Positions 10,478-42,842 of a stretch of DNA of 42,842 nucleotides are shown here, piece after piece (the first letter of the stretch is position 1; each line of letters begins with the position of its first letter). Origin of the DNA: Hyphochytrium catenoides (taxonomy: Eukaryota > Protista > Hyphochytriomycota). Location: the NCBI GenBank assembly GCA_900088475.1, contig FLMG01004558.1, forward strand, positions 1-42,842, read 5' to 3'. The notes beneath the pieces are model-generated. The model worked only from the letters and a program-made list of their open reading frames with translations, searched no databases and was not told the DNA's origin. The translations under genes and the position numbers were made by a program.

Positions 10478-13400
10478 ATGGAGGGGCAAAAGGTGCGTTT
10501 TACGCGATGTGGAGCTCTCCTGCCCCTGGCTACGCCTGGATTTGCTCTAACTTTACTTTGCCAGAGGCTTCCCTATCTTTGCCGGCGCTTCCCCTAACTT
10601 GAAAACTTACCTCTGTCTATCCTCATATACTTCCTCTCATTGGGCACCGTCTTTTCTCTAGGTTTACGTTCCGGACAAGGAGCACATCTGGCTCCCAGCC
10701 GTGGTGGTTAGCTTTTCCGGCTCCAACGTCGAGGTGAAAATAGCGGACGATGGGGATGTGAAGTCCTTAGGGGAGCTGGTAGGGACCGTCAGGGAGGTTG
10801 ACCTGACGGACAAGGAGGTGGTGCAGATGATTGCCAGTCACACAGTGAGCACCGGGAGCAATGCGAAGAATTTGCCGCTTCAGAATGAGATGCGCAAAGA
10901 GACTGGCATTGATGATATGATCGATATGAATCACCTGCACGAGGCGGCTATCCTGTACAACCTTAGAAGAAGGTTCTTCAAGGGCCTGCCATGTTAGTCC
11001 ACCTCCTAGCGTGCACTCTTCTGTCCTTCGGTCGCGCTGCTGGCCCGGCTGTTGTTATTACAGCCACCTTATTTCTAGCTTGTCCGCCACTCTCTCCTGC
11101 TTGCAATCTTAACCTGGAGACCCTTCTGCTCTGGAGGCTCATCATGTAGTTGGCACGATGGATAGTACAACTTAGCGCCCCGCCCCCTTTATCCCCGGTT
11201 CTATGCCTTACCATTTTCACTTCATATCTCTTCTTTCAATGCTCTTACCTTTCCGCCGCTCTCGTCTATAGACACCTACACCGGAAAGATTTGCATAGCG
11301 GTGAACCCTTACCAGTGGCTGGATCTGTATAGCAAGGACCTAATGCACACCTATAACAATGCGGATCGGGACGGGCTCACGCCTCACGTGTACAGCACCT
11401 CTTCGGACGCTTTCTATGATATGTTTAACCACTCCACCAACCAGTCCATTCTAGTCAGTGGAGAGTCCGGAGCAGGAAAGACCGAGACGACGAAGATTAT
11501 GATGGTGAGCGAGCTGCATTGGCCTTCGCTCTAAACCCTTCGGGCTCTAAGCCGCTTGAGATGTTGCTGCCATTGGGTTTCTTCCCGTATGAGTCTTCAT
11601 TATGCGCCTTAGCAAACCGTTCTGATCTTCGGCTCTATGTAGCTTGAAGCCCTCGGCTCTAGTTTGAGGCTTGTTTATCCAATAGACTTTCTCCTTTTCT
11701 GCCGTTCTGTTCACCTACAGGCGCACTTGGCCCACCTGTCTCGCGGACATGACGCTGAGAATCAGCGCGTCATCCAGCAAGTCATTGAGGCAAATCCTCT
11801 CCTAGAATCCTTCGGTAATGCGAAGACAATCAGGAATGACAACAGTAGTCGATTTGGCAAGTTCACAGAGCTCCAATTCAATATCGAGGTAAGGGCGATG
11901 GACCTTGCAAGCCGATTGACCTGAAACCGCTTGCCTTTCCTTCTTCTCGTTCTTAATCCCTCATTTTCCTTGTTGCTGATATATCTACCGCTTTCAGAGA
12001 AGGCGTCTGATCCTCTGCTCTTATCTCTACTTCGTTTCTATGATCAGGGAGTGCTTGTTGGTGCCAAGTCCAGGACGTACTTGCTAGAAAAGAGTCGTGT
12101 GATCTATCAGGCGCCTGGGGAGAGAAACTTCCACTTCTTCTACCAGCTCCTTGCCGTGGCGGGAGACTATCCACAGTTGCAGCTGAGAGACACGACTTAC
12201 AAGCTTGTGCGAGAGGATCCCACAATTACCAAGCAGAGGTCAGAAGATTACTGCCGGAACAAGCTCCTCCTTTTGCTCTTCCGCGCTATATGTTGCCATG
12301 AGAAGCGTCTCGCCTTATACGGCCACCTTGCTCCCTTACCTGCGATTAGCCGTCTTCATACGCCTTACATCCCGTTTGTGTCTCCAGTTCTGTCAATAAG
12401 TTCAAGAAGACTTGGTCAGCTCTAGATATTGTGGGAATCTCCTCCGCAGACCGCGAGGAGATGCTGAAGGTGGTGGCTTCCGTCCTTCATGTGGGAGAGA
12501 TTGAGGTGGCCGCAAAGAATGGAGATGTGGACAGCAGCACCGTGGTCAGCACTGACCTCTTGAAGACCGTTGGAGGTAAGACTTTGATGCAGCTGCACAA
12601 TCGTCATGGCCGTTGCTGGGCGTAGCTTGCGGTGTCCACAAGAAGGGCTGGTGACGAATAACTAGGTTCACCTGCTAGAGATGAGGGGTGAAATTCCTGC
12701 GGTTGGAAGAGGCCTAAAGGTTAGTCACGAGATGTGACGGTCGTATGTCTGACTACTTCCTGGCGGTGCAGAACTTCTGGGCTGTGACGCAGCCAGCCTT
12801 GAGAACGTCATTTGCAATCGCACTGTCGTTGTAGGGAGAGAGAAGATCAAGAAACCGATGACCGCGACGCAGGTATATGTTTTCCTTATCTCATTACAAT
12901 GTTCCCGCTGCGGCCTACCTGTTATTGTTCCCTTGCAGTGACCTCTCGTTAGGTCTTGTTCCCTTCTCCCGCTAACCGTCTGTTGATATTTGGAAGTATC
13001 CCTATCGTCCTACTTTTAGACACCCTCTTCGGCATTACATCTCCCAATTCTAAGGACCTCTTCCCTCTTTTTCCTCTCGCTCCCCTTCCCTTCCCGCATC
13101 ATTGTTCACTTCCTTCTTATAAAGGCGGCGGATACGCGTGATGCCTTGGCAAAGGCTTTGTACGCCAAACTCTTTGACTGGCTAGTAAGCAAAGTTAACG
13201 ACCTAATCAGTGCAAAGAGAGGGGCAAAGCAGCACGTAGGCATCTTGGATATCTTTGGCTTCGAGCATTTTGAGCAGAATTCCTTCGAGCAGTTCTGTAT
13301 CAACTATGCAAATGAAAAGCTGCAGCAAAAGGTAAGCGCGGTTCGAGAGGGAGAGCAAGTGAAGGCTCTGCAGTATCATCGCGGGCTGGACGTGGCGCGT

Positions 13401-16400
13401 GTGTGTCTCTGAGACTGTGCAGATGGGTGAGCGATTGCCCGTGCCAACGACAATCCTTACGTTCTCTTCCGCTTGCAGTTCACTCAGGATGTGCTAAAGA
13501 CTATTCAGGAGGAGTACGAGGAGGAAGGCATCTCTTGGGACCACGTCGAGTTTGCTGATAATCAAGATGTGCTGGACATGATTGAGGGCAGACTTGGAGT
13601 TATCTCAATGCTTAATGAGGAGGCACTGCTCCAAAGAGGAACAGACCAGGCCTTTGCGCATAAGCTTGCCACTGTCATGAGTGAAAACCCTCTGTTTACC
13701 GTCCCAAGGTGAGAGATAGTTGTTAAGAGAAACAAGTGGAGACGGTATGCTAAGTTTGATTTTACTTTAGACTGGACAAATGTGCCTTCACTGTGGCTCA
13801 TTATGCTGGGAAGGTTCAGTACAACGCCCGTGGGTTCTTGGAGAAGCATCGTGATAGCTTGTTGCCAGACGTGGAAGAATTGATGGTCGCTTCGAGCAAC
13901 CGCCTGGTGTCTGCCATCTTCAAGCTCAAGAGCGAAGGCAAGCCAGAGTGTCCTGTCTGTCTCTCTCTCTCTCTGTCTGCGTCCTCACTTGCATTTTGTC
14001 AGCCATATAGCGGCCCGGTCTCTTGGATTGTCCTCATGTAGCCGGTCCACCCGATGTCTCTTTTTTCTTGACCTTGCGCCTCCTCCACGTTATCTTGGGC
14101 CTCAACTATAAGGATAATCTTCCTTCCCTTTTTTAACTGGTGCCTGATCGTCCTGTGTTAAAGCAGATGATACCAGTAAGGGCCGCTCCAAGGGTCAACT
14201 GCTCGCCACCACTGTCGCCACCCAGTTTAAGAACAACCTCTCGGAGCTGATGGCCAAGATCAGCGCCACTAACGTCTATTACGTGCGCTGCATCAAACCG
14301 AACTCACTGAAGAGCCCAGACGATTTTGAGCATCCGAGTGTGATCAACCAGCTCAGGTGCGCAGGAGTGGTTGAAGCCATCCGGGTCAGCAGATCAGCAT
14401 ATCCAAACTCTATGCCGCACAACGATGCCCTTATGAGCTTTGCAATGCTAGCTCCTGGGGGAATGAAGTGAGTTACACTAAGCAACCTCCATGTTTCTCT
14501 CTCTTTCTCTCTGTTTCTCTCTCTCTCTATTTCTCTCTCTCTCTCTATTTCTCTCTCTCTCTCGTCCTTTATGTCTCTCTGTGTCAAACTTTTCTTTTGT
14601 CTCATTCCACCAAACTCTTGCCATCCCTTGTACTCTGGCTGTCTCCTCGTGTCAACAACTCTTTGTTCTGCTGGCTTTCCCCTACATCTGTCCTCACATG
14701 GACTGGACTGTCTGCCACTTGTCATCTTTTATAGAGCATTGGAGGAGGCACGTCAGGCTGTGGATCAGAAGGGACACCTTCACCAGCTTATGGTGACGCT
14801 TCTTCCTGGTAAAATGGCAGCTCAACAGGGTTATCATATGCTTCATGCCTAACTGCAGCGCTGCGTCACTACTATATTCGCAGGGAGAGATATTATTGAC
14901 TTCCAGGTGGGAAGGACTAAAATCTACTTCCGGGAGGGAGTGCTGGAGGCGTTAGAGATAAGGTGAGCCCTAGCGAAACTCCATTGCCGCCCTTCGGCTA
15001 CCTCTACCTCTTTCTTTCTCTAGCCACTACTTCTTTCTCATAACTCCTAGCTCCTGTGGGTCTCCGTGAGCGTTGGCAAACACTATGCCGCTTGTGGCAA
15101 CTTCTTCACATGCAAACTTCCATTCCCCCGGCTGACACGCGGAATGTCATACCTGCAGGAGAGGAGAGGCCCTTAAGGCCAAGGCAGTGCTCATCCAGAA
15201 GGTAAGCAGTGAGAGTATGACATGGAATTTGAAGTGAGAGACTTTGACCTCGTTCCCTCCTGGCATTCTCCATATTCCCAGATTATCCGCGGCTATGTCT
15301 ACCGCCAACGATTTCTACGGATGCGCCGTGCTACATGCAAGATTCAAGCAACATATCGTATGCATTATACCCGCAAGCGCTACAAGGCAACGATCAGAGG
15401 GTTCACCAGGTACGTGAAAGCGTGAGACTGATAGGCAGAGGGAGCACGTGCCCGAGAACGATCAGCAGCGACTAGAGAACCCAGTAGAGATTGGGTGGAG
15501 CCAGATGTCCCGTAGGAAAGGGATCATCAAGGGTCAAACGGCGACGACAGAGCAACCTGTACCTGGCTCTACCCATGCAAAGAGAGAACCTAGGATATAG
15601 AGGTTTTAAAGCGCGAAGTGTACCAGAGGTAGTGGGCGAAGTGGGTGCAGAAGAGTAGAACTTGAAGGGAAGGGAACTAACGAAGTGCTGACCTGATTCT
15701 TCTTTCTTTGCTGTCTTCTCCAGACTGCAAGCCGTATATCGCGGACGCAAAGCCCGCCGGCTGTACTATGAGATGCGCATGAGGAGGCTTGCCTCCTTGG
15801 TGCAAGCATTCTTCAAAGCTGTCACCTTCAGAAAGAGGTTCTTGGTAGGCCATTGAACCCAATATCTTCGAACACAGTCTTCCTAGTTCACTCCGCCGCA
15901 CTTTCCTCTTGGCTCCCTCTGTGGTGTGGTCTCTTAGGGCTTGTTCCCAGCGTAGTGTCGGAATCTCTGTTGCCATGGCTCCACATATCTCTATCTCAGT
16001 GTATTCTCCTCACTTCTTATAGCAAAAACGCCGTGCGTGCATCAAGATCCAGTCCCAATGGAGAAGGGTCATGGCGACCAGAAAGGTGGAGGTCGTAAGG
16101 AAGGATAGAGAAGAAGAGAAAGTCCGCAAGCAAAAGGTAATGGGGCTTCCCGATTCTCGGACCGTCCTCGGGCCCCTTTTCTCTTTTTGAATGTTGGGTT
16201 CGATCTTCTTGCTTCTTCGCTTAACACTGTCCTCTTGCTCCTCAGCTTGAGAACCTCAAGAATGCTCTTAAGTACACCGCAGCTCCTCAGACTGCTGCTG
16301 GCAAGGGCTTGGGGCCAGTCAGTCCGCCCATTGTAGAGGGATCCGCAGCAATTCTTGAGGTAAGTAGCTCAGGCCCCCACGACCGTAGCTTTGCCTTAGT

Positions 16401-18782
16401 CCGCAGATCAACCTTCGACCTATCCATTTGCCTGTGACCCAGCCTTAGGCCTCAACGGTCTCTTCCATGCCATCGGTTGGCACAGTTCCCTTCCCTCCTC
16501 GTTTCCCTTTCGTTGGAGTGCGCATGTCGGGGTGCAGTTGGCTTGACTAACGCCCATTTATTTCCTCCTCTTAGGAGCTTGAGAACGAGAACTCTCAGTT
16601 GAAGAAGCAGGTGGAGGAGCTCCAGCAACAGCTGTCAAAGATGAGAGAAGAGAACGGGAAGCTCCGAGAATGGCAGAAGAGCAAGGCTGTGGATGAGAGT
16701 GTCAAGCAGATGAGCAGGAAGCAGCAGGAGGGCAAGGACGCAGCGTATGCCGATGCGGTTGAGAAGCAGTATGAGTCCCTCAGATCCTTCTTGGTTGAGA
16801 GGTTCAAGCTTCCCACCGACGCTGGCACTCCTGCACGGTACGAACAGCGCGTCAACAAGCTTGAGAAGCAAGGTAAGAACGCCAACCAACCGGCAGAATC
16901 TGCTGTCCTTGTGCCAATCTAATGGTTTTTCTATGTCCGTCTCTCCATTCCTCGCTTCCTCTTTACACGTCAACCTTCTGGAAAAGGAGGTTCTCGAACG
17001 GACGTCAATGACGGTGAACGGCTTAGCGAGAGCAAGCTGCAGAGAGATCGCTCCATCTCTAAGGTCGGTCTAATTTCTCGTTTCTCTAGTGATCCCTCAA
17101 CGGTATCTGACTCTTGCTGCGTTCCTTTCTGTAGACCACTCCTGCGACCCCTGGAGACGTTCTTGAGCCCTCAGGGAACGCTGACGAGGACAAAATTCGC
17201 TCAGAAGTCCTCGCAGTAAGTAGATTGCCTCCTGATGTGGAGCAACAAAGATGTTGACTTTTACTATTGCAGCACTTGCGCAAGGGCGAGAGATCTCTGG
17301 CCCGTGCCAAGCAGCAGGCAGGACCTTCGCATACCAGGAGGATTAGAGATCAGTGGGAAGAGATCACGAACTTCCCGCCACCCATGGAGTACAGGTTAGC
17401 TCGTGTTAACTTCTCCATGTGTCTCTCTCTTTGTGCCACATCCTTATCCTCTCCTTTGTCCCTACGTCTTTTCGCCACTCTTTTGCTTGCAACTAACCCC
17501 TGTGCCTATTCTCAGCTTGGGCTCAGTCCCATGGAAGAGGCTGCTGACGGATTGGGCACAAGGAAACCCGAAGAAGCTCGACTACATGACCAGGTACAGA
17601 TTCTCCTTCAGTCATTCCTGGGTCTTGTTGGCACTGCGTCCGTCTATCTTCTTTCTCTCTCTTTCTCTACCACTCTTTGTCACGCTTTCTGCAAGCTCGC
17701 CTTAGGACTCCTCGTTCCCCGCTTTGAAGTGGTTTTCCTTCGCTCTTCATTGTCGTTGCGTTCCACTCCCCGCGGCTATTGTAACTTTATTACTATGGCG
17801 CTGGTTGGTAGAAGATGGAGGGCAACTGCCCGATTTAGCCGCTTTAAAGATCTCTGCTTCAGTTTGCCCTACATGTCGCTCACTCTCTGCCCTGTCCCTT
17901 CTTACAGATGGCTCAAGAATGTACTCGATGGGGCTCCAATCCCCAACCCTCACTTCCCTATGGGCGTGGAGCTGAAGAGTGTGACGCCGATGATGCTGGA
18001 CGGCTTCATTCAGCTCGTCATCCCCAAGCTGGCGGAGAGGAGGGACATTAGGGTCCATGTACACACCAAGGAGTTCATCGGAACGAGCATGAGAATCACC
18101 CTTACCAAGAGAGAGGGTAGGCCGTGCCTATTCCCTGTTTTTCGTCTGTGTACCTGTACTAACGGCTAATGCTGGTGCTCTTTTTTCTGCCTCCTGGGTA
18201 ACAGGTGGTCGCGTGGGAGACGAGTCCGTGCCAGCTTCTGCTCTGCCGTCAGCTGCTCGAATGACTACTTTGCTCGGCCAGAACAGTCAGTCCGATATGC
18301 TAGGCATTGACGATGTACGTCCTGCTTACCTTTCTCCATCGCTTGCACTAGCGCTCCCGTCTATTCATTTCGTGCTCACTCACACGCCACAGGGCAAGGA
18401 AGAAGGTTCACGCCAGAGCTTCATCTCTCTCTCACGGAAGCATACGGCGGGATCTCGAGGCAGTGGAGACGGAAGCAGCCNNNNNNNNNNNNNNNNNNNN
18501 NNNNNNNNNNNNNNNNNNNNNNNNGTCTTACTTCCTGTTTTGCATTGTTCCCTGGCGATTTCTCTCACTTGGTTCCAACTAATTATCTCTCAACTGCAGT
18601 CCGGTCCGCCCAGCTCCCGTGGCGGTAGCGCGAGCTCAAGCTTCTCTAATGGCAGCTCTTTCTCAATGCGAGAAACTGGCTCCATTGACGACGGGTCGGA
18701 GCCCTCTAGAAAATCAGATCTCAAGGAGAAAAAGTCTAGTCGGCTTTCCATTTTCAGTAGGCGGAAGAAGGAAGGGCCATGA
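10478..18782 (+). CDS. Unconventional myosin heavy chain (N-terminal SH3-like region, motor, 5 IQ motifs, coiled coil, globular tail); more than 20 exons
   Basis: 15-nt first exon MEGQK joined to [13 protein letters not shown]. Motifs: '[14 protein letters not shown]', 'VNPYQWL', P-loop GESGAGKT, switch [11 protein letters not shown], 'YLLEKSRV', 'RDALAKALY', switch II DIFGFE, 'YVRCIKPN', '[12 protein letters not shown]', 'GRTKIYFR'. IQ motifs at about 15190-16090, coiled coil at about 16580-16870. N gap at 18481-18524 covers one donor site. Confidence 0.95.
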
Positions 18783-19201: not shown

Positions 19202-20632
19202 CTACAGAGCGGCCTGCATGGCCGTAGCAGCTACTAGCACCATTACTGCACCCAGCACTGACACTGACTCGGCGCCTGACTTAGCGCCACTGCCACTGCC
19301 ATCGCCGCCATCTGAGGAGGAATCCGAATCGCTGGCAGAATCGCCATTACCACCGGTTGGCTTATCCTTTGGCTTCTCGGGCTGAGGAACAGGTGGAATG
19401 GTGAGCGATGGGTACTGGAATCCTGCAGGGACGGTCTCACAGAGACCGGGAGGCGTATTGTCTGTGCATTTCTCACAAATTTGCTGGTCATTGCGGAAGC
19501 ACTTGACCTTACTGCAAGCAAGAGTTGTCTCATAGCACTTCGGGTTCTTCTTTCGTAACGTTGCAGCGTCTATCATTGGGATGTTGTTAGGATGGAGAGT
19601 GGTGTTAGAGTAGTACTCAATGGCAAGCTCCGCTCGCCTGGTGTTAGCCTCGGGATCTGAGGCGTTCTCCCAGAACTTGAAACCACCAGTCGTCGAGCAG
19701 ACATCCCCGTTGCATTGCCTTGAGAAGAAGACGCCCTTGTACTCGTTCTCCTTGTCCATGCAGAACTTCATATAGTCTGCGGTCGCATTGTCCGACTTGT
19801 ACTTTGGTTTGCCCGTTTGTGGGTCCACGATATCGTACATGCCCACAAGGCCGTTGATGTCGATGAGGCCCATTGTCCTATAGTTCCAGGTACAAGTTAT
19901 GCCGTCAGGAGTACCCTCGGGAGTGCCATAAGCTCCCTTGCACAGTCCATTCTTGAGTCCCTGGCAGATAGGCGCCTTCTTGTAGGCAAAGGTGTTGGTG
20001 GTACAGTCTGCAGGTAGAGCGAACCACCAGTTCTTAGGGTACTTGGCCTTGATCCCTTCAAACTTCCACGCTCCAATGTATGGGCCTAGTGGAGGGTTGT
20101 CCATGCCCACAGTGCCGTCATCCTTCAGAGGCTTACTGCTGAAGTTCCCAAACTTTTCTTGGGTCAGTTTCTGAGAGGCGTAACTTCCGTTCCATAGCTG
20201 AGGACCCCAGTTCTGTCCAGGAGTGACAGCTCCACCATCAATGGCATAATAGCGGCCATACTCGAACGGTGTCTCATAAGCAGGAGGGCTGTTATTATAA
20301 TAAGCTAGAGCAGCGTTGGGTTGCACCATTTGGACTTCATAGAAGACGATGAGATTGGCGTTGGAACGTCGCACACAAGGCTCCGCGAGGGCATCCTCAG
20401 GGATAACTTCTTCCTGTGCGTACTGAAGGCTGCCCAGCAGGCTTGCAGTGTTTCCAGAGGAGAGATCGAACTTGGCTTGCCACTTCTTCGCGGTCTCATT
20501 GTAGACGTGGGGGTTGTTCCCCAGGAAGCGAGTGTGATACATGGTCACGACAGGCATCTTGTAGGCAGCGGCGGCCTCAGCGCCTGCCCAGCCGCTGGCC
20601 ACCATGGCCATTGCCAAGACAGCAACCTTCAT
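19202..20632 (-). CDS. Secreted Cys-rich, predicted GPI-anchored cell-surface protein of unknown function (476 aa, no intron in the CDS)
   Basis: Signal peptide MKVAVLAMAMVASGWAGAEA. Cys/aromatic-rich core (IVFYEVQMVQP, LGPYIG, YPKNWWFALPADC, PDGITCTWNYRTMGLIDINGLVG, FKFW) recalling an uncharacterised oomycete secreted family. Pro/Ser/Gly/Asp linker and a hydrophobic C-terminus preceded by SGA (GPI signal). Confidence 0.88.
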   Translation of the reverse strand: MKVAVLAMAMVASGWAGAEAAAAYKMPVVTMYHTRFLGNNPHVYNETAKKWQAKFDLSSGNTASLLGSLQYAQEEVIPEDALAEPCVRRSNANLIVFYEVQMVQPNAALAYYNNSPPAYETPFEYGRYYAIDGGAVTPGQNWGPQLWNGSYASQKLTQEKFGNFSSKPLKDDGTVGMDNPPLGPYIGAWKFEGIKAKYPKNWWFALPADCTTNTFAYKKAPICQGLKNGLCKGAYGTPEGTPDGITCTWNYRTMGLIDINGLVGMYDIVDPQTGKPKYKSDNATADYMKFCMDKENEYKGVFFSRQCNGDVCSTTGGFKFWENASDPEANTRRAELAIEYYSNTTLHPNNIPMIDAATLRKKNPKCYETTLACSKVKCFRNDQQICEKCTDNTPPGLCETVPAGFQYPSLTIPPVPQPEKPKDKPTGGNGDSASDSDSSSDGGDGSGSGAKSGAESVSVLGAVMVLVAATAMQAAL

Positions 20633-37900: not shown

Positions 37901-38313
37901 GCCTGCTTTCAAATCTTCGTGGTCGTCAACTAACTTGTTAGGTTGTGTCCTATACCCCTGGACTATTCTGAAGGGCTAATACTCCTTCCCTTGTCCTTCG
38001 CTTGCTGCTCTCGGAAGGGTCGCTCGAAGGATGATGGCCGCCCCCTGCCCCCAATAAAGATACCCTCTACCCTGCCCTTCTGCTTGTTCTTCAGTTTGTT
38101 GTTCCTGTGCATAGGAATAGCGGAAGAAACATTATATCCTCCGCCTTCTTTCAAGTAGGCTTCAGCGGTAGGCTTCACCTCTCTGTCGTCAGTTCTGGAG
38201 TCTCCCTTCATTTCTCTATTTCCAAAAAGCATCTTCAACGAGCAAGATAATAGCGCCAGCTTCATAGCTTCTGTCTAGTACTACTGCCGGACGATCCTAT
38301 TGCTGAAGGCGAA

Positions 38314-38964
38314 ATGGTGTGGCTCCACAGGCTCTCAGAGCTCCTCTTGGTCGCTTGTCTTGTGTCCAGCTCGCTAGCCAACCTTGATACCAGCGTACGG
38401 AGAGGAGGTCAGGAACGCTCTTCCTTTAATGATTGGCAGCGGCGTCAATTTACCCACGACAAGGCGCTTCGGGGTCAATCTCATGATGCCAACCCTGATG
38501 GGCTAGACTTAGGCGCCGTTGGTCAAGTAACTCTCTCTTCATCATTGACAAGCACGGAAGACACGCAGAGTTTACGTGGCCAAGATAGCGAAAAGGACAA
38601 GACTACCGGTCGTCACCCTTCTGCCACCAGCAAGAATTCTGATAAGAGTCCTAAGGTGAAGGATGCTTCGTCAGGAAAGTTTGACGATACCTCAGACAAC
38701 GTCGTCCACCCTGGAGACAGCAGAGGCCCCGCGGGGTCCACCAGTAAAAACCACATTCTACCTGGTCCGAAAACAACCCAAGCAGCACCAGGCACAAGGG
38801 ACCCGCAGCAGATTCCTAGTGGTAAAGACAAAGGAAGTTCCTCCGATCACCCCACACCACGCGGTCCATCCTCACAACAACCCACGAAGGGAGCGCAGGG
38901 TCACTCTACGGGTGGGCCGTCTGTGTCAGGAAGGCCATTCAATAAAGTCAATGGCTCAAAATAA
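38314..38964 (+). CDS. Secreted low-complexity protein (216 aa), paralogue of the downstream collagen-like gene
   Basis: Signal peptide MVWLHRLSELLLVACLVSSSLA, 'RR...KALRGQSHDANPDGLDL' and a second 'SLRGQ', then an S/G/P/K/T-rich tail with scattered Gly-X-Y. Confidence 0.75.
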   Translation: MVWLHRLSELLLVACLVSSSLANLDTSVRRGGQERSSFNDWQRRQFTHDKALRGQSHDANPDGLDLGAVGQVTLSSSLTSTEDTQSLRGQDSEKDKTTGRHPSATSKNSDKSPKVKDASSGKFDDTSDNVVHPGDSRGPAGSTSKNHILPGPKTTQAAPGTRDPQQIPSGKDKGSSSDHPTPRGPSSQQPTKGAQGHSTGGPSVSGRPFNKVNGSK

Positions 38965-39004
38965 AGGTTCTCCACCAAGGTAAGGGAATATGGGATATCA
39001 AAGC

Positions 39005-39400
39005 CTTTCCTCTGTCATCCTGTTGGTGAGAAACTATTGCCACGTTGAAGATGTCTTTTCTTAGTTTTCCCCCTCGTCTCTATTACTATCGAACCTCACA
39101 AGAACTAGTCTCAAAACCTCAAAGAGAAGCTATAGGCTGTCGCTAATCATAAAAAAGAAAGTAAAAGTTTGCAATGAGCGCCTCATTTTTTGAGCAGCCT
39201 AGCCAGGTCCGCCTCCTCTCAGCTGTCAATTTTGTTCATTATAAAATGGGTGCACCGAGAATGAGAAGAGAGAAGTTGTCGGCACTGAGTGCACTGCAGA
39301 AAAACATGGATGTGAATGTGAAACATCCTTTTGGGGAGATCATCAAGTCCATTGTGCTAATCCATAATGTGATATCACTGAGTTTCCCCCCAAGTCATCA
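39005..39400 (+). mobile_element. Possible decayed C-terminal Harbinger transposase fragment
   Basis: 'HPVGEKLLP...LFLVFP', 'FF..PSQVR', 'IKW' and 'EIIKSIVLIHN' echo GDxAYP..L..PF / LS..R / KW / II.A...LHN in order. Confidence 0.3.
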
Positions 39401-41530
39401 TCGACATCCGCCCCTCTTTAAGTCTTCTTCCTCCCAGTTTTACCTCTCTCTGTCTGACTTTCTCGATAAGTGATACTGTAGTCTTTTGCAGAAGAGCAGA
39501 ATGACAAGCCTGATGATGTAAATAAGAAAGCTGGTCAGCCCCGCACGGTGAAGCTAGGTATCTTTATTATTGCCAGCTCCTCTGCCCTGTTGCTAATAAC
39601 CGTTTTTTGAACAGGGGACAGCATGATGACAATGCTCGGCAGTACAAGGGCATCCAGATCAACGCCGACCTCTTTTTGTTGCCATTGGGACAGCAGCCTG
39701 TTAGCTGCGCTGTAATAATAGGACTCGAATGCTGTTGCGATGACGACGAGCTGGGCCTGACTGTTTGACCATCATCCCAGTCCACCAACCAGCTCGCTAG
39801 AAACGAAGATGTCGATAGCCAACTGAGAGCACAACGATCCCACACATGAGCATCAGTGGTGGCGGCTGGCACGTGGAACTGGATAGAGGGAAGCTGGATT
39901 TTCAAACAAAATGAGCCAGTAGCCGCATCGAGTGGCTCCCAGGCACAGAATGCCTGCGAAAGCGTGTCCTACCCAGCTTTTGTCAGCTACAAAGAGAAAA
40001 GGACGATAACCTGGTCGATTTCTGCTCGTCTTCATGTAAGGCTACCGCGTGCCGCAGGTGACTGCTGGTTTGGTCATCCTCCTGCTTCTTCTTCTACCTC
40101 TTCAGGATAATAGCAAAGCAAGCTTCTGCCCGAGAGAGCGAGACAGAATGAAGAGGGCGGGGGAGAGAGAGGCGGGGAAGAGGAAGAGGACAGGAGAGAG
40201 GGGAAGGGAGAGAGGAAGAGAGAGAGAGATAGGAAGGAGGAACGAACAACCTGGCCACTTCGATCTCGAAAGGGGGACAGGGCGGGCTGTCTCCTCAGGC
40301 GTTACGGACGCTTATAATACTTCAATTATTTCCTGAAGTATAATTTCCTCATTACATTGTATCAGGAAACCTAGAGAATGTTTCCATAGGAATATTCGTT
40401 GAGTGAACAGTCACTCATCACTTCAGAAACGAAAGAAGTGCACTTCCCTTTCCGCCCTGCCCGTGCCTTCCCTCTGTCTTTCTCCTCTTCTGTTCTCTCC
40501 TCTGTTGGTCTTCTCCCCTCCCCTGTCCCCCTCTTTTTGCGCTTCCTCAATCAGTTCAGCAGACGGAACCATCATCTCTCTCCTGGGCGTCCTCCATCAT
40601 CATCACCCTTACCTCACTCCCTTCATCATGAATTGCCTGGCATTAGGATCAACTACTACTTCCTTTGCACGCATCCATGGTCTCTGGTAGGAGCCGTACG
40701 ATGATACTTTAATGGGGTTGTTTGGGCTTGGCACGCCTGAACAGCCAACCCCTGGTGAATAACATAGGAGAGGAGAGGAGTTCAACTGCCTATTAGGTCT
40801 GTTCCTCCTCACCACCACTCTGTACGCTGTTGTGGTGGTAAATCACAAGCGAGCAACAACAGATCAAGACGGAGGAGAAGGGTAAGGAGCTGAGTCATTC
40901 AGAGTACTTGTACACGGCTAAAGAACCTATATGAGTGTTCGATCGCGTGCTCCTGCCTGATGAGAGAAGGGCCAAAAGCCTTCCTTGTTGGGGCTGCAAC
41001 AGCCAGCCAAATGACCTAGATAGGATTGGTAATTAGAAGGAAATGTCATCAGCATAGAACTATTATTCTTGTCCTCCTGTCGCCCAGTGGTACGCTACTC
41101 TTTTCAGGGAGGAAAAGGATGAGGGAAGGAAGAAATGAGGACTCTGCCAGTCTATCGTTCTCTCTTGTCCTTTTCACGAGATTCAAGCGATCTTGCCGTT
41201 GCTTAGGACAACAATCTCGTAGAAGACAGACACGCTTATAAAGAGCCAGCCTGCAAGAGGGTTGCCCTCCTCCCTCTCATTCATTTGTTCCTGTACAGTC
41301 AATGATCTATCACGGTTTGTGCTAGCTAGTTTGATGGAAGACTGAGCACTCCTCGAAAGGTCGCCCCCGCAATGCATTGATTGCCCCTTGTTACCCCGGT
41401 ACACGCCTCATGCCCCGACCTTTTTCCCTCTAACTCCGTCCAAGGGTTACTGCCTTTGATTAAGCTTCCAAGCATCTGGGACGGATCGAAAGAATAAGGG
41501 TCGGCCCGCTGCCTTTTATGAAAGTTTCAA

Positions 41531-41546
41531 TCACTTCATCATTTCT
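41531..41546 (+). promoter_or_regulatory. Possible INR/FPR-like core promoter
   Basis: TCACTTCATCATTTCT resembles the oomycete TCATTYYNCAWTTT initiator, about 120 nt upstream of the ATG at 41651. Confidence 0.25.
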
Positions 41547-41650
41547 GTGCAAGGGAGCACTCCCTCGCCAGATACCTGCCGCCGCTATCTTTCCCTTCTT
41601 CCCGTTTGCCACCACCTTCTTCTCCGACCGCATTGGTCGCTGAAGGAGCG

Positions 41651-42842
41651 ATGGTATGGCTCCAGAGGTTCGCGGACCTTCTCGTGGTCGCTGCTTTACT
41701 TTCCAGCCCTCTAGTTCATGTAGAGGCTACCGGACGGAGGGGACAACACTTGTTCTCTGAGCATCATCGTAGCCGCAAAGCGCTTCGAGGACATCATGAC
41801 GCACACAACAATCCCGCGTCGCTTGATGGCATGGAGCTGGTCGCAGGCCGAGCGGCCCTTTCGATCATCCCTGTTGAGCACCGATTAGAAAGGCCAGCAT
41901 TGAAAATCATCAAAAATGTCTATTATGACGATAACCCTGCCAAGAGTCCCAAAGATAACAACAACTATCCTGCAGAGTACTCATCTGGCAACAAGGATGA
42001 CAATAAGCATAAATACGGCTACCCCGGAGGACAGACCACCGAAGCTCCGAAGGGCTACGCTGGCCCTCCAGGTCCCCAAGGTCCTAAGGGAGATACCGGC
42101 AATCCAGGACCTAAAGGCCCAGCCGGAGAGAGGGGCCCACCAGGCCCTAAAGGAGATGATGGGTACAAAGGGGCGACCGGTCCAGCTGGCCCTGCAGGTC
42201 CTGAAGGCCCCAAGGGGCCTCCTGGTTCAAACGGCTACAAGGGTGAGACTGGTCCTCCAGGCGCCATAGGTCCTCAAGGGCCGAAGGGTGAGAACGGTTA
42301 CCCTGGTGCTACCGGCGCCGCAGGCCCTAAAGGAGATAACGGAGCCACTGGTCCTGCTGGACCTCAAGGCAAGAAAGGAGAGGACGGTAAGCCAGGTTTC
42401 CCTGGAGCTCCCGGAGAGAAGGGAGCCAAGGGAGACGTTGGACAGCAGGGACCTTCAGGACCTACGGGTCCGGCTGGTCCTGAAGGACAGAGAGGATATC
42501 CCGGAAGCCCGGGTCCCACAGGTCCTCCCGGTCTACCAGGTTCGGTAGGGCCGGCAGGACCACAGGGACCCAAGGGAGAGAAGGGCAACCAAGGAACTAC
42601 AGGCGGCGCTGGATCTCCAGGTGTGGACGGCAGTCCCGGATCTGCTGGTCCTCCAGGAGCAATCGGACCTCAAGGACCACAAGGTGAAAAAGGCTACCGC
42701 GGTGAGGCTGGACCTGCAGGTGCCAAGGGAGACACTGGAGCTACTGGGGCCCCTGGCCAGCCAGGACCCCAAGGGCCAGCAGGACAGAATGGGAGCCCTG
42801 GACTGAAGGGTGACAAGGGTGACAGCGGGGCGACGGGTCCTC
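41651..42842 (+). CDS. Secreted collagen-like protein, 3' partial (not in the ORF track)
   Basis: Open frame from ATG 41651: [26 protein letters not shown] (signal peptide), 'RR...[13 protein letters not shown]...DGMEL', then from 42053 87 complete uninterrupted Gly-X-Y triplets ([18 protein letters not shown] ... [11 protein letters not shown]) to the window end. Confidence 0.95.

Follow-up and report, generated by a model that had tools for sequence, protein, structure and literature searches.

Collagen has long been regarded as a hallmark of animals, and to our knowledge no collagen from a non-holozoan protist has been studied at the bench. The closest described systems are those catalogued by Linden & King 2021 (10.1101/2021.10.08.463732), who searched UniProt proteomes for collagen domains. 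In the parts of the survey considered here, collagen domains were recorded in 19 of 31 SAR families, stramenopiles included, the non-metazoan collagens being scattered in distribution, and most collagen-encoding species also had a P4H-like domain. The same parts give medians of 85.5 aa and 0% Pro for the SAR collagens and of 192 aa and 29.9% Pro for the metazoan ones, with overlapping distributions of both length and Pro content. From the survey table, with its columns as interpreted by us, the maximum repeat length and maximum Pro content were 348 aa and 48% in Aphanomyces stellatus, 378 aa and 9% in Saprolegnia parasitica, 363 aa and 44% in Guillardia theta, and 300 aa and 44% in Symbiodinium. 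Most of the oomycetes in the table rows examined had no collagen, or only short Pro-free repeats of 48-114 aa, and this was also the case for the Phytophthora species (none, or repeats of 48-114 aa at 0% Pro). Hyphochytrium was absent from the survey text and from the table rows examined, and a literature search on oomycete, Phytophthora, and protist collagens yielded nothing specific beyond this survey.

The window analysed in this study, which is the whole stretch of 42,842 nucleotides with about 50% G+C, carries a collagen-like gene at its end. We conclude, with a probability of about 0.78, that the gene is nuclear, intact, and made up of one exon, that it belongs to an intron-rich stramenopile (most likely Hyphochytrium catenoides), and that it encodes a secreted collagen-domain protein. 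Positions 41651-42842 on the forward strand were translated into 397 residues without a stop codon, the frame being open at the window end, and the ATG at 41651 was the first one downstream of an in-frame stop at 41519. The ORF was absent from the ORF list because its frame runs off the end of the window, as the initial annotation had supposed.

The collagen triple-helix region was located at 42053..42842 (+ strand) by translation, Pfam, and a bridging contig. From residue 135, Gly occurred at every third residue 88 times consecutively, giving 87 complete Gly-X-Y triplets, after which the window ends within a further triplet ('GP'). The run therefore comprises at least 263 residues with no interruption, encoded by 789 nt with no intron in the window; this frame had no stop codon in the collagen part, and the remaining five frames had 3-15 stops each. 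Pro was present at Y in 19 of the 87 triplets (0.22) and at X in 33, which corresponds to 29.9% of the X and Y positions. Lys occupied Y in 17 triplets, GPP was found six times, and KGD (seven) and KGE (four) gave 11 charged motifs. The protein contained 12 Tyr, six of which were at X positions. Pfam PF01391 (Collagen) was matched in 4 stretches with 146.3 bits (E 2.1e-43), the cut-off being 27.2 bits. All four Gly codons were in use (GGA 33, GGT 28, GGC 18, and GGG 9). Furthermore, Tandem Repeats Finder detected three 9-nt micro-arrays and nothing else, and the single longer internal repeat (42249 versus 42645, 121 nt) showed an identity of 62-70%. The collagen sequence is therefore old and diversified, with no recent expansion. 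These results agreed with the initial annotation, which had described at least 87 perfect triplets without an intron, a hand count of 19 Pro at Y (identical to our recount), frequent KGD/KGE, and codons too diverse for a simple tandem expansion, and which had named PF01391 for a check. The GC3 of the collagen part was 0.40 versus 0.50-0.64 in the neighbouring genes, which could be due to repeat-specific codon choice or foreign origin. The preferred Pro codon was CCT, like that of a neighbouring 476-aa ORF.

Upstream of the triplets, the start codon and a predicted signal peptide of residues 1-26 were assigned to 41651..41728 (+ strand) from a hydrophobic core, a cleavage-like site, and the match to a paralogue described below. 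The protein begins with MVWLQRF. A short charged start is followed by the hydrophobic core, which spans residues 7-20 and reaches a Kyte-Doolittle mean of 2.6, and residues 1-26 are closed by a small-residue, cleavage-like site between VEA and TG. The signal peptide and the non-collagenous region ending at residue 134 that had been proposed initially were thus both recovered, the former as a putative one based on these sequence features. The non-collagenous N-terminal region, residues 27-134 (108 residues; 41729..42052, + strand), was characterised by AlphaFold2, Pfam, and library searches. It was rich in His, Asn, Lys, and Tyr, had no Cys, and included a KALRG motif common to the paralogue. 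The AlphaFold2 single-sequence model of residues 27-150 had a mean pLDDT of 57 and no secondary structure; on this prediction, the region resembles a disordered spacer or a propeptide rather than a trimerisation domain. No relative of the N-terminal 134 residues was found among the candidates of 218-695 aa in a word-indexed library of 5.8 billion proteins, and an exhaustive phmmer search of the N-terminal region against 1.84 billion cluster representatives likewise gave no relative. The Pfam scan of the 397 residues indicated no family besides Collagen, with neither TSPN nor VWC, and no trimerisation domain was detected within the 397 residues in the window by Pfam or within residues 27-150 by AlphaFold2.

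A tandem paralogue of 216 aa (38314..38964, + strand; BLASTP E 3e-14) was found 3.3 kb upstream of the collagen gene. It has a signal peptide and a KALRG region and no Gly-X-Y run. The similarity was concentrated in residues 1-70, with a MVWLxR...LLVxA start common to both proteins and a DNA identity of 74% that spans the start of the gene and extends into the bases immediately preceding the ATG. Since the paralogue shares the first ~70 residues, it ties the 5' part of the collagen gene to the host genome. No Pfam family was assigned to the paralogue, and its tail was Pro/Gly/Ser-rich and non-periodic. The idea that this tail is a decayed collagen was rejected, as the alignments were not significant and no other Gly-X-Y run of at least 5 triplets was present on the coding strand of the window. 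As a separate observation, KALRG is located in both genes (38314-38964 and 41651-41860) 16-20 residues past the predicted cleavage site, and the paralogues diverge completely afterwards. By its position it is reminiscent of the RxLR/PEXEL-type processing motifs known from oomycetes and apicomplexans; here, however, the sequence is K-x-L-R, and the organism lives as a saprotroph.

The protein was then compared with the surveyed protist collagens (10.1101/2021.10.08.463732). In the parts of the survey examined, these share with it the IPR008160/PF01391 repeat, often a signal peptide, and a length and Pro content overlapping the metazoan range, whereas the N-terminal region of the present protein had no relative in the two libraries searched. 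With a repeat of at least 263 aa and 29.9% Pro, the protein is at the metazoan median in Pro and ranks in the upper tail among the collagens of its own lineage, as far as the survey rows examined extend. Because collagens are documented at survey level in protists, stramenopiles included, the gene is a new example of already catalogued protist collagens, unusual for its lineage, and not a new kind of thing. The rarity implied by the initial annotation was accordingly not upheld in view of the 19 of 31 SAR families with collagen domains in the portion of the survey considered.

Several likenesses to metazoan fibrillar collagens were recognised, namely the unbroken Gly-X-Y run, Pro at Y (22% of triplets), and the KGE/KGD pairs; in addition, the Pro content at X and Y (29.9%) equals the metazoan median given in the examined part of Linden & King 2021 (10.1101/2021.10.08.463732). 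The best sequence match with a solved structure was rat collagen alpha-2(I) (PDB 3hqv_B, 428 bits over seven stretches), for which the composition bias was very high, and the nearest language-model (Atlas) clusters were chordate collagens, with 97 of 256 features shared. Judging from the very high bias terms and the 97/256 shared features, the likeness to rat collagen and the chordate clusters is composition-driven and is no evidence of common descent. The helix had been called animal-style in the initial annotation; the long unbroken run and the animal-like Pro content are in line with this wording. There are also differences. Metazoan fibrillar collagens have a C-terminal COLF1 (fibrillar collagen NC1) propeptide and an N-propeptide with TSPN or VWC; the N-terminal region here was without TSPN and VWC in the Pfam scan and is predicted to be disordered, and the 397 residues of the present protein are without Cys. 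In vertebrate collagen genes, the sequence coding for the triple helix is split into many short exons of the 54-bp type; this pattern is absent here, where one exon extends over at least 1.19 kb. Collagen IV has a C-terminal NC1 (C4) domain and a frequently interrupted helix; the present run was uninterrupted over the 263 residues in the window.

A whole-protein search, confined to library proteins of 242-770 aa, gave 4770 matches, all of which were restricted to the Gly-X-Y part, at the level of composition, and with an identity of at most 54%; in this length range, the product of the gene itself was not recovered, nor was any orthologue. The named matches were all bacterial (Kangiella DUF7467 proteins and Glaesserella YadA-like adhesins); among the match sequences inspected, several resembled phage tail-fibre types. 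Bacterial and phage collagen-like proteins (Kangiella DUF7467, Glaesserella YadA-like, phage tail-fibre, and BclA), the best-scoring matches in the length range searched, showed 45-54% identity over Gly-X-Y. In the best 120 of the 4770 matches, however, Thr or Gln is favoured at Y, almost never Pro, and aromatic residues, including Tyr at X, are lacking; the fraction of triplets with Pro at Y was 0.22 in the present protein, whereas these 120 had a median of 0.026 and reached 0.167 at most. The bacterial and phage-type matches have unrelated flanking domains, whereas the present gene adjoins spliced eukaryotic genes, so that neither a prokaryotic or phage context nor a Thr/Gln-rich, Pro-poor Y position was seen. 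When metagenome and viral contigs were scanned with the protein as guide, the loci detected were generic collagen-like ones with at most 54% identity and no N-terminal match. For the collagen-like proteins of giant viruses, the best IMG/VR match had 53% identity in the Gly-X-Y part alone, and neither a location in recognisable viral DNA nor a close viral relative was found for the gene.

The flanks contained myosin, cation-efflux transporter, SNARE, and HIG1 genes, all cut into short exons, and the nearest Atlas clusters of the HIG1 protein were fungal and oomycete, none of them animal. The assignment to a stramenopile genome made initially was thus borne out, the flanking genes being intron-rich, eukaryotic, and not metazoan. 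The H. catenoides genome has been reported to contain 3.64 introns per gene (PMC5795050); collagen and P4H are absent from the text and supplements of that paper. The runs that contain the locus date from 2011 and 2017 and belong to one study, in keeping with the history of the H. catenoides project, whose 2018 genome updated an earlier BioProject. No virus-type genes were recognised in the neighbourhood from the ORFs and Pfam scans.

To evaluate the genuineness of the locus, Logan contigs of two DNA runs (X1 and X2) and two soil/rhizosphere metagenomes (X3 and X4) were compared with positions 38000-42842; no RNA run was among those listed. A contaminant or chimeric assembly, in which host DNA is joined to animal or bacterial collagen DNA, might be suspected because the gene abuts the window end, assemblies often break at collagen repeats, and X2 had a zero-depth bin at 41564-41725. 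The depth of X1 was continuous, however, and the assembler depth of the collagen part was similar to that of the flanks in both libraries (20.4 versus ~27 in X1 and ~295 versus ~300 in X2). The junction between the N-terminal and collagen regions at 42053, whose coverage the initial annotation had left to be checked, was crossed by single contigs, namely X1 record 8 (2595 nt), which covers 41914-42842, and X2 record 15 (42009-42321). X1 record 8 also extends 1666 nt past the window end, and the gene therefore continues in real DNA. In X3 and X4, contigs of 151 nt matched 41314-41463 (upstream non-coding), 41590-41725 (gene start), and 42172-42483 (collagen part) with 1-4 differences each, so that soil metagenome sequence is present both for the non-coding DNA upstream and for the collagen part; since these contigs are near-identical to the locus, the source organism or a very close relative lives in soil. 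The exact-product look-ups for three ORFs of the window gave no record, and the degenerate DNA pattern of the last 15 codons gave no match in the metagenome contigs. Because the depth is like that of the flanks, contigs bridge the junction, and the paralogue 3.3 kb upstream ties the 5' part to the host, contamination or chimerism is very unlikely; the lack of introns, unlike in animal collagen genes, is a further argument against it.

Two other explanations accept the gene as real. The Gly-X-Y part may have been acquired horizontally from a giant virus, a bacterium, or an animal cDNA and fused to a host signal peptide and N-terminal region. As the N-terminal 70 residues are common to a non-collagen paralogue, the collagen part can be seen as a separable 'cargo', and the GC3 lower than that of the neighbours, the scattered spread of non-metazoan collagens in the examined parts of the survey (10.1101/2021.10.08.463732), and the asfarvirus-like insertions reported elsewhere in H. 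catenoides (PMC5294986) would be in line with such an origin. We nevertheless consider it unlikely, since no viral or metagenomic match exceeded 54% identity or lay outside Gly-X-Y, no virus-like genes were recognised nearby, the composition differs from that of the mostly bacterial and phage-type matches, the Pro codon choice is host-like, and the old internal divergence argues against a recent arrival. Alternatively, the product could be a secreted Gly/Pro-rich low-complexity protein that is disordered or otherwise assembled and forms no triple helix. The 397 residues in the window contain no recognised trimerisation domain, the N-terminal region is predicted to be disordered, and the upstream paralogue has a non-periodic Pro/Gly/Ser-rich tail, all of which would suit such a protein. 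This explanation appears quite improbable, because, in the absence of selection for a triple helix, it is difficult to account for 88 consecutive in-register Gly among such varied X and Y residues and codons, and because the observed variants spare Gly: of five variants within the CDS, three were synonymous and two were at non-Gly residues (H48Q and F250S), and no variant removed a Gly, the Gly codons being touched synonymously only.

Our preferred reading, a host gene for a secreted collagen-domain protein, allows a mechanism to be proposed. Three chains would wind into a collagen triple helix; with the rise of 0.286 nm per residue of the collagen helix, the rod would be at least ~75 nm long. 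A trimerising or nucleating domain is probably located in the C-terminal part beyond the window. The helix may be stabilised by the ~30% imino acids and the 11 Lys-Gly-Asp/Glu charge pairs, and bacterial collagens attain useful melting temperatures in this way without hydroxyproline. The 19 X-Pro-Gly sites have the form expected of substrates of collagen prolyl 4-hydroxylases, and if an ER prolyl 4-hydroxylase candidate acts on the protein, 4-hydroxyproline would be formed at the 19 Y-position prolines. The 17 Y-position Lys and the 12 Tyr are possible sites of cross-linking or glycosylation. As for the role, our best guess is that the protein would serve as fibrous material in the cell wall, the zoospore cyst coat, or an adhesive. 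The full proposal, that a hyphochytrid makes hydroxyproline-stabilised collagen fibres of more than 75 nm that go into the wall, the cyst coat, or an adhesive, by means of its own ER prolyl 4-hydroxylase, is put forward tentatively, and we regard it as doubtful. If it were true, an animal-style collagen biosynthesis pathway would have arisen or survived far outside Holozoa. The gene is in any case a clean test case, being intact, single-exon, predicted to be secreted, with Pro at the median animal level, and from a culturable organism, and it raises the questions of whether a stramenopile can build a stable hydroxylated triple helix and what the job of such a fibre would be in a walled osmotroph. 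These questions bear on whether collagen-type matrices have evolved more than once, and the protein could be an animal-free source of collagen-like material.

Some minor observations were also made. An X1 contig had a loose end at 42694, from which it diverged for 255 nt while keeping the Gly-X-Y register with other residues (GEKG, then PAGKDGERGY). This register-keeping but divergent end suggests a second collagen-like gene copy or a length-variant allele in the genome. In the intergenic stretches 40311-40581 and 38986-39046, the contigs of both DNA runs differed densely from the window sequence, with 10-12 substitutions over 271 nt as well as a number of small deletions, suggesting divergent haplotypes or strains. 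The myosin gene at 10662-16919 (+ strand) encodes a heavy chain with an SH3-like N-domain, a motor, and a coiled-coil tail in many exons of ~90-130 codons, and CT/GA repeats translating as SLSLSL are abundant in its introns. The 476-aa ORF at 19205-20632 (- strand) was intact. Its start resembles a signal peptide, its product contains many Cys and a tail rich in Ser/Gly/Asp, and the C-terminus is hydrophobic and looks like a GPI anchor signal; it had no Pfam family and no match in the library of 5.8 billion proteins. Finally, the third-best match of the collagen region among the solved structures was PDB 8zxl_X / 9ius, a 780-aa chain named 'spindlefibril / axialfibril'.
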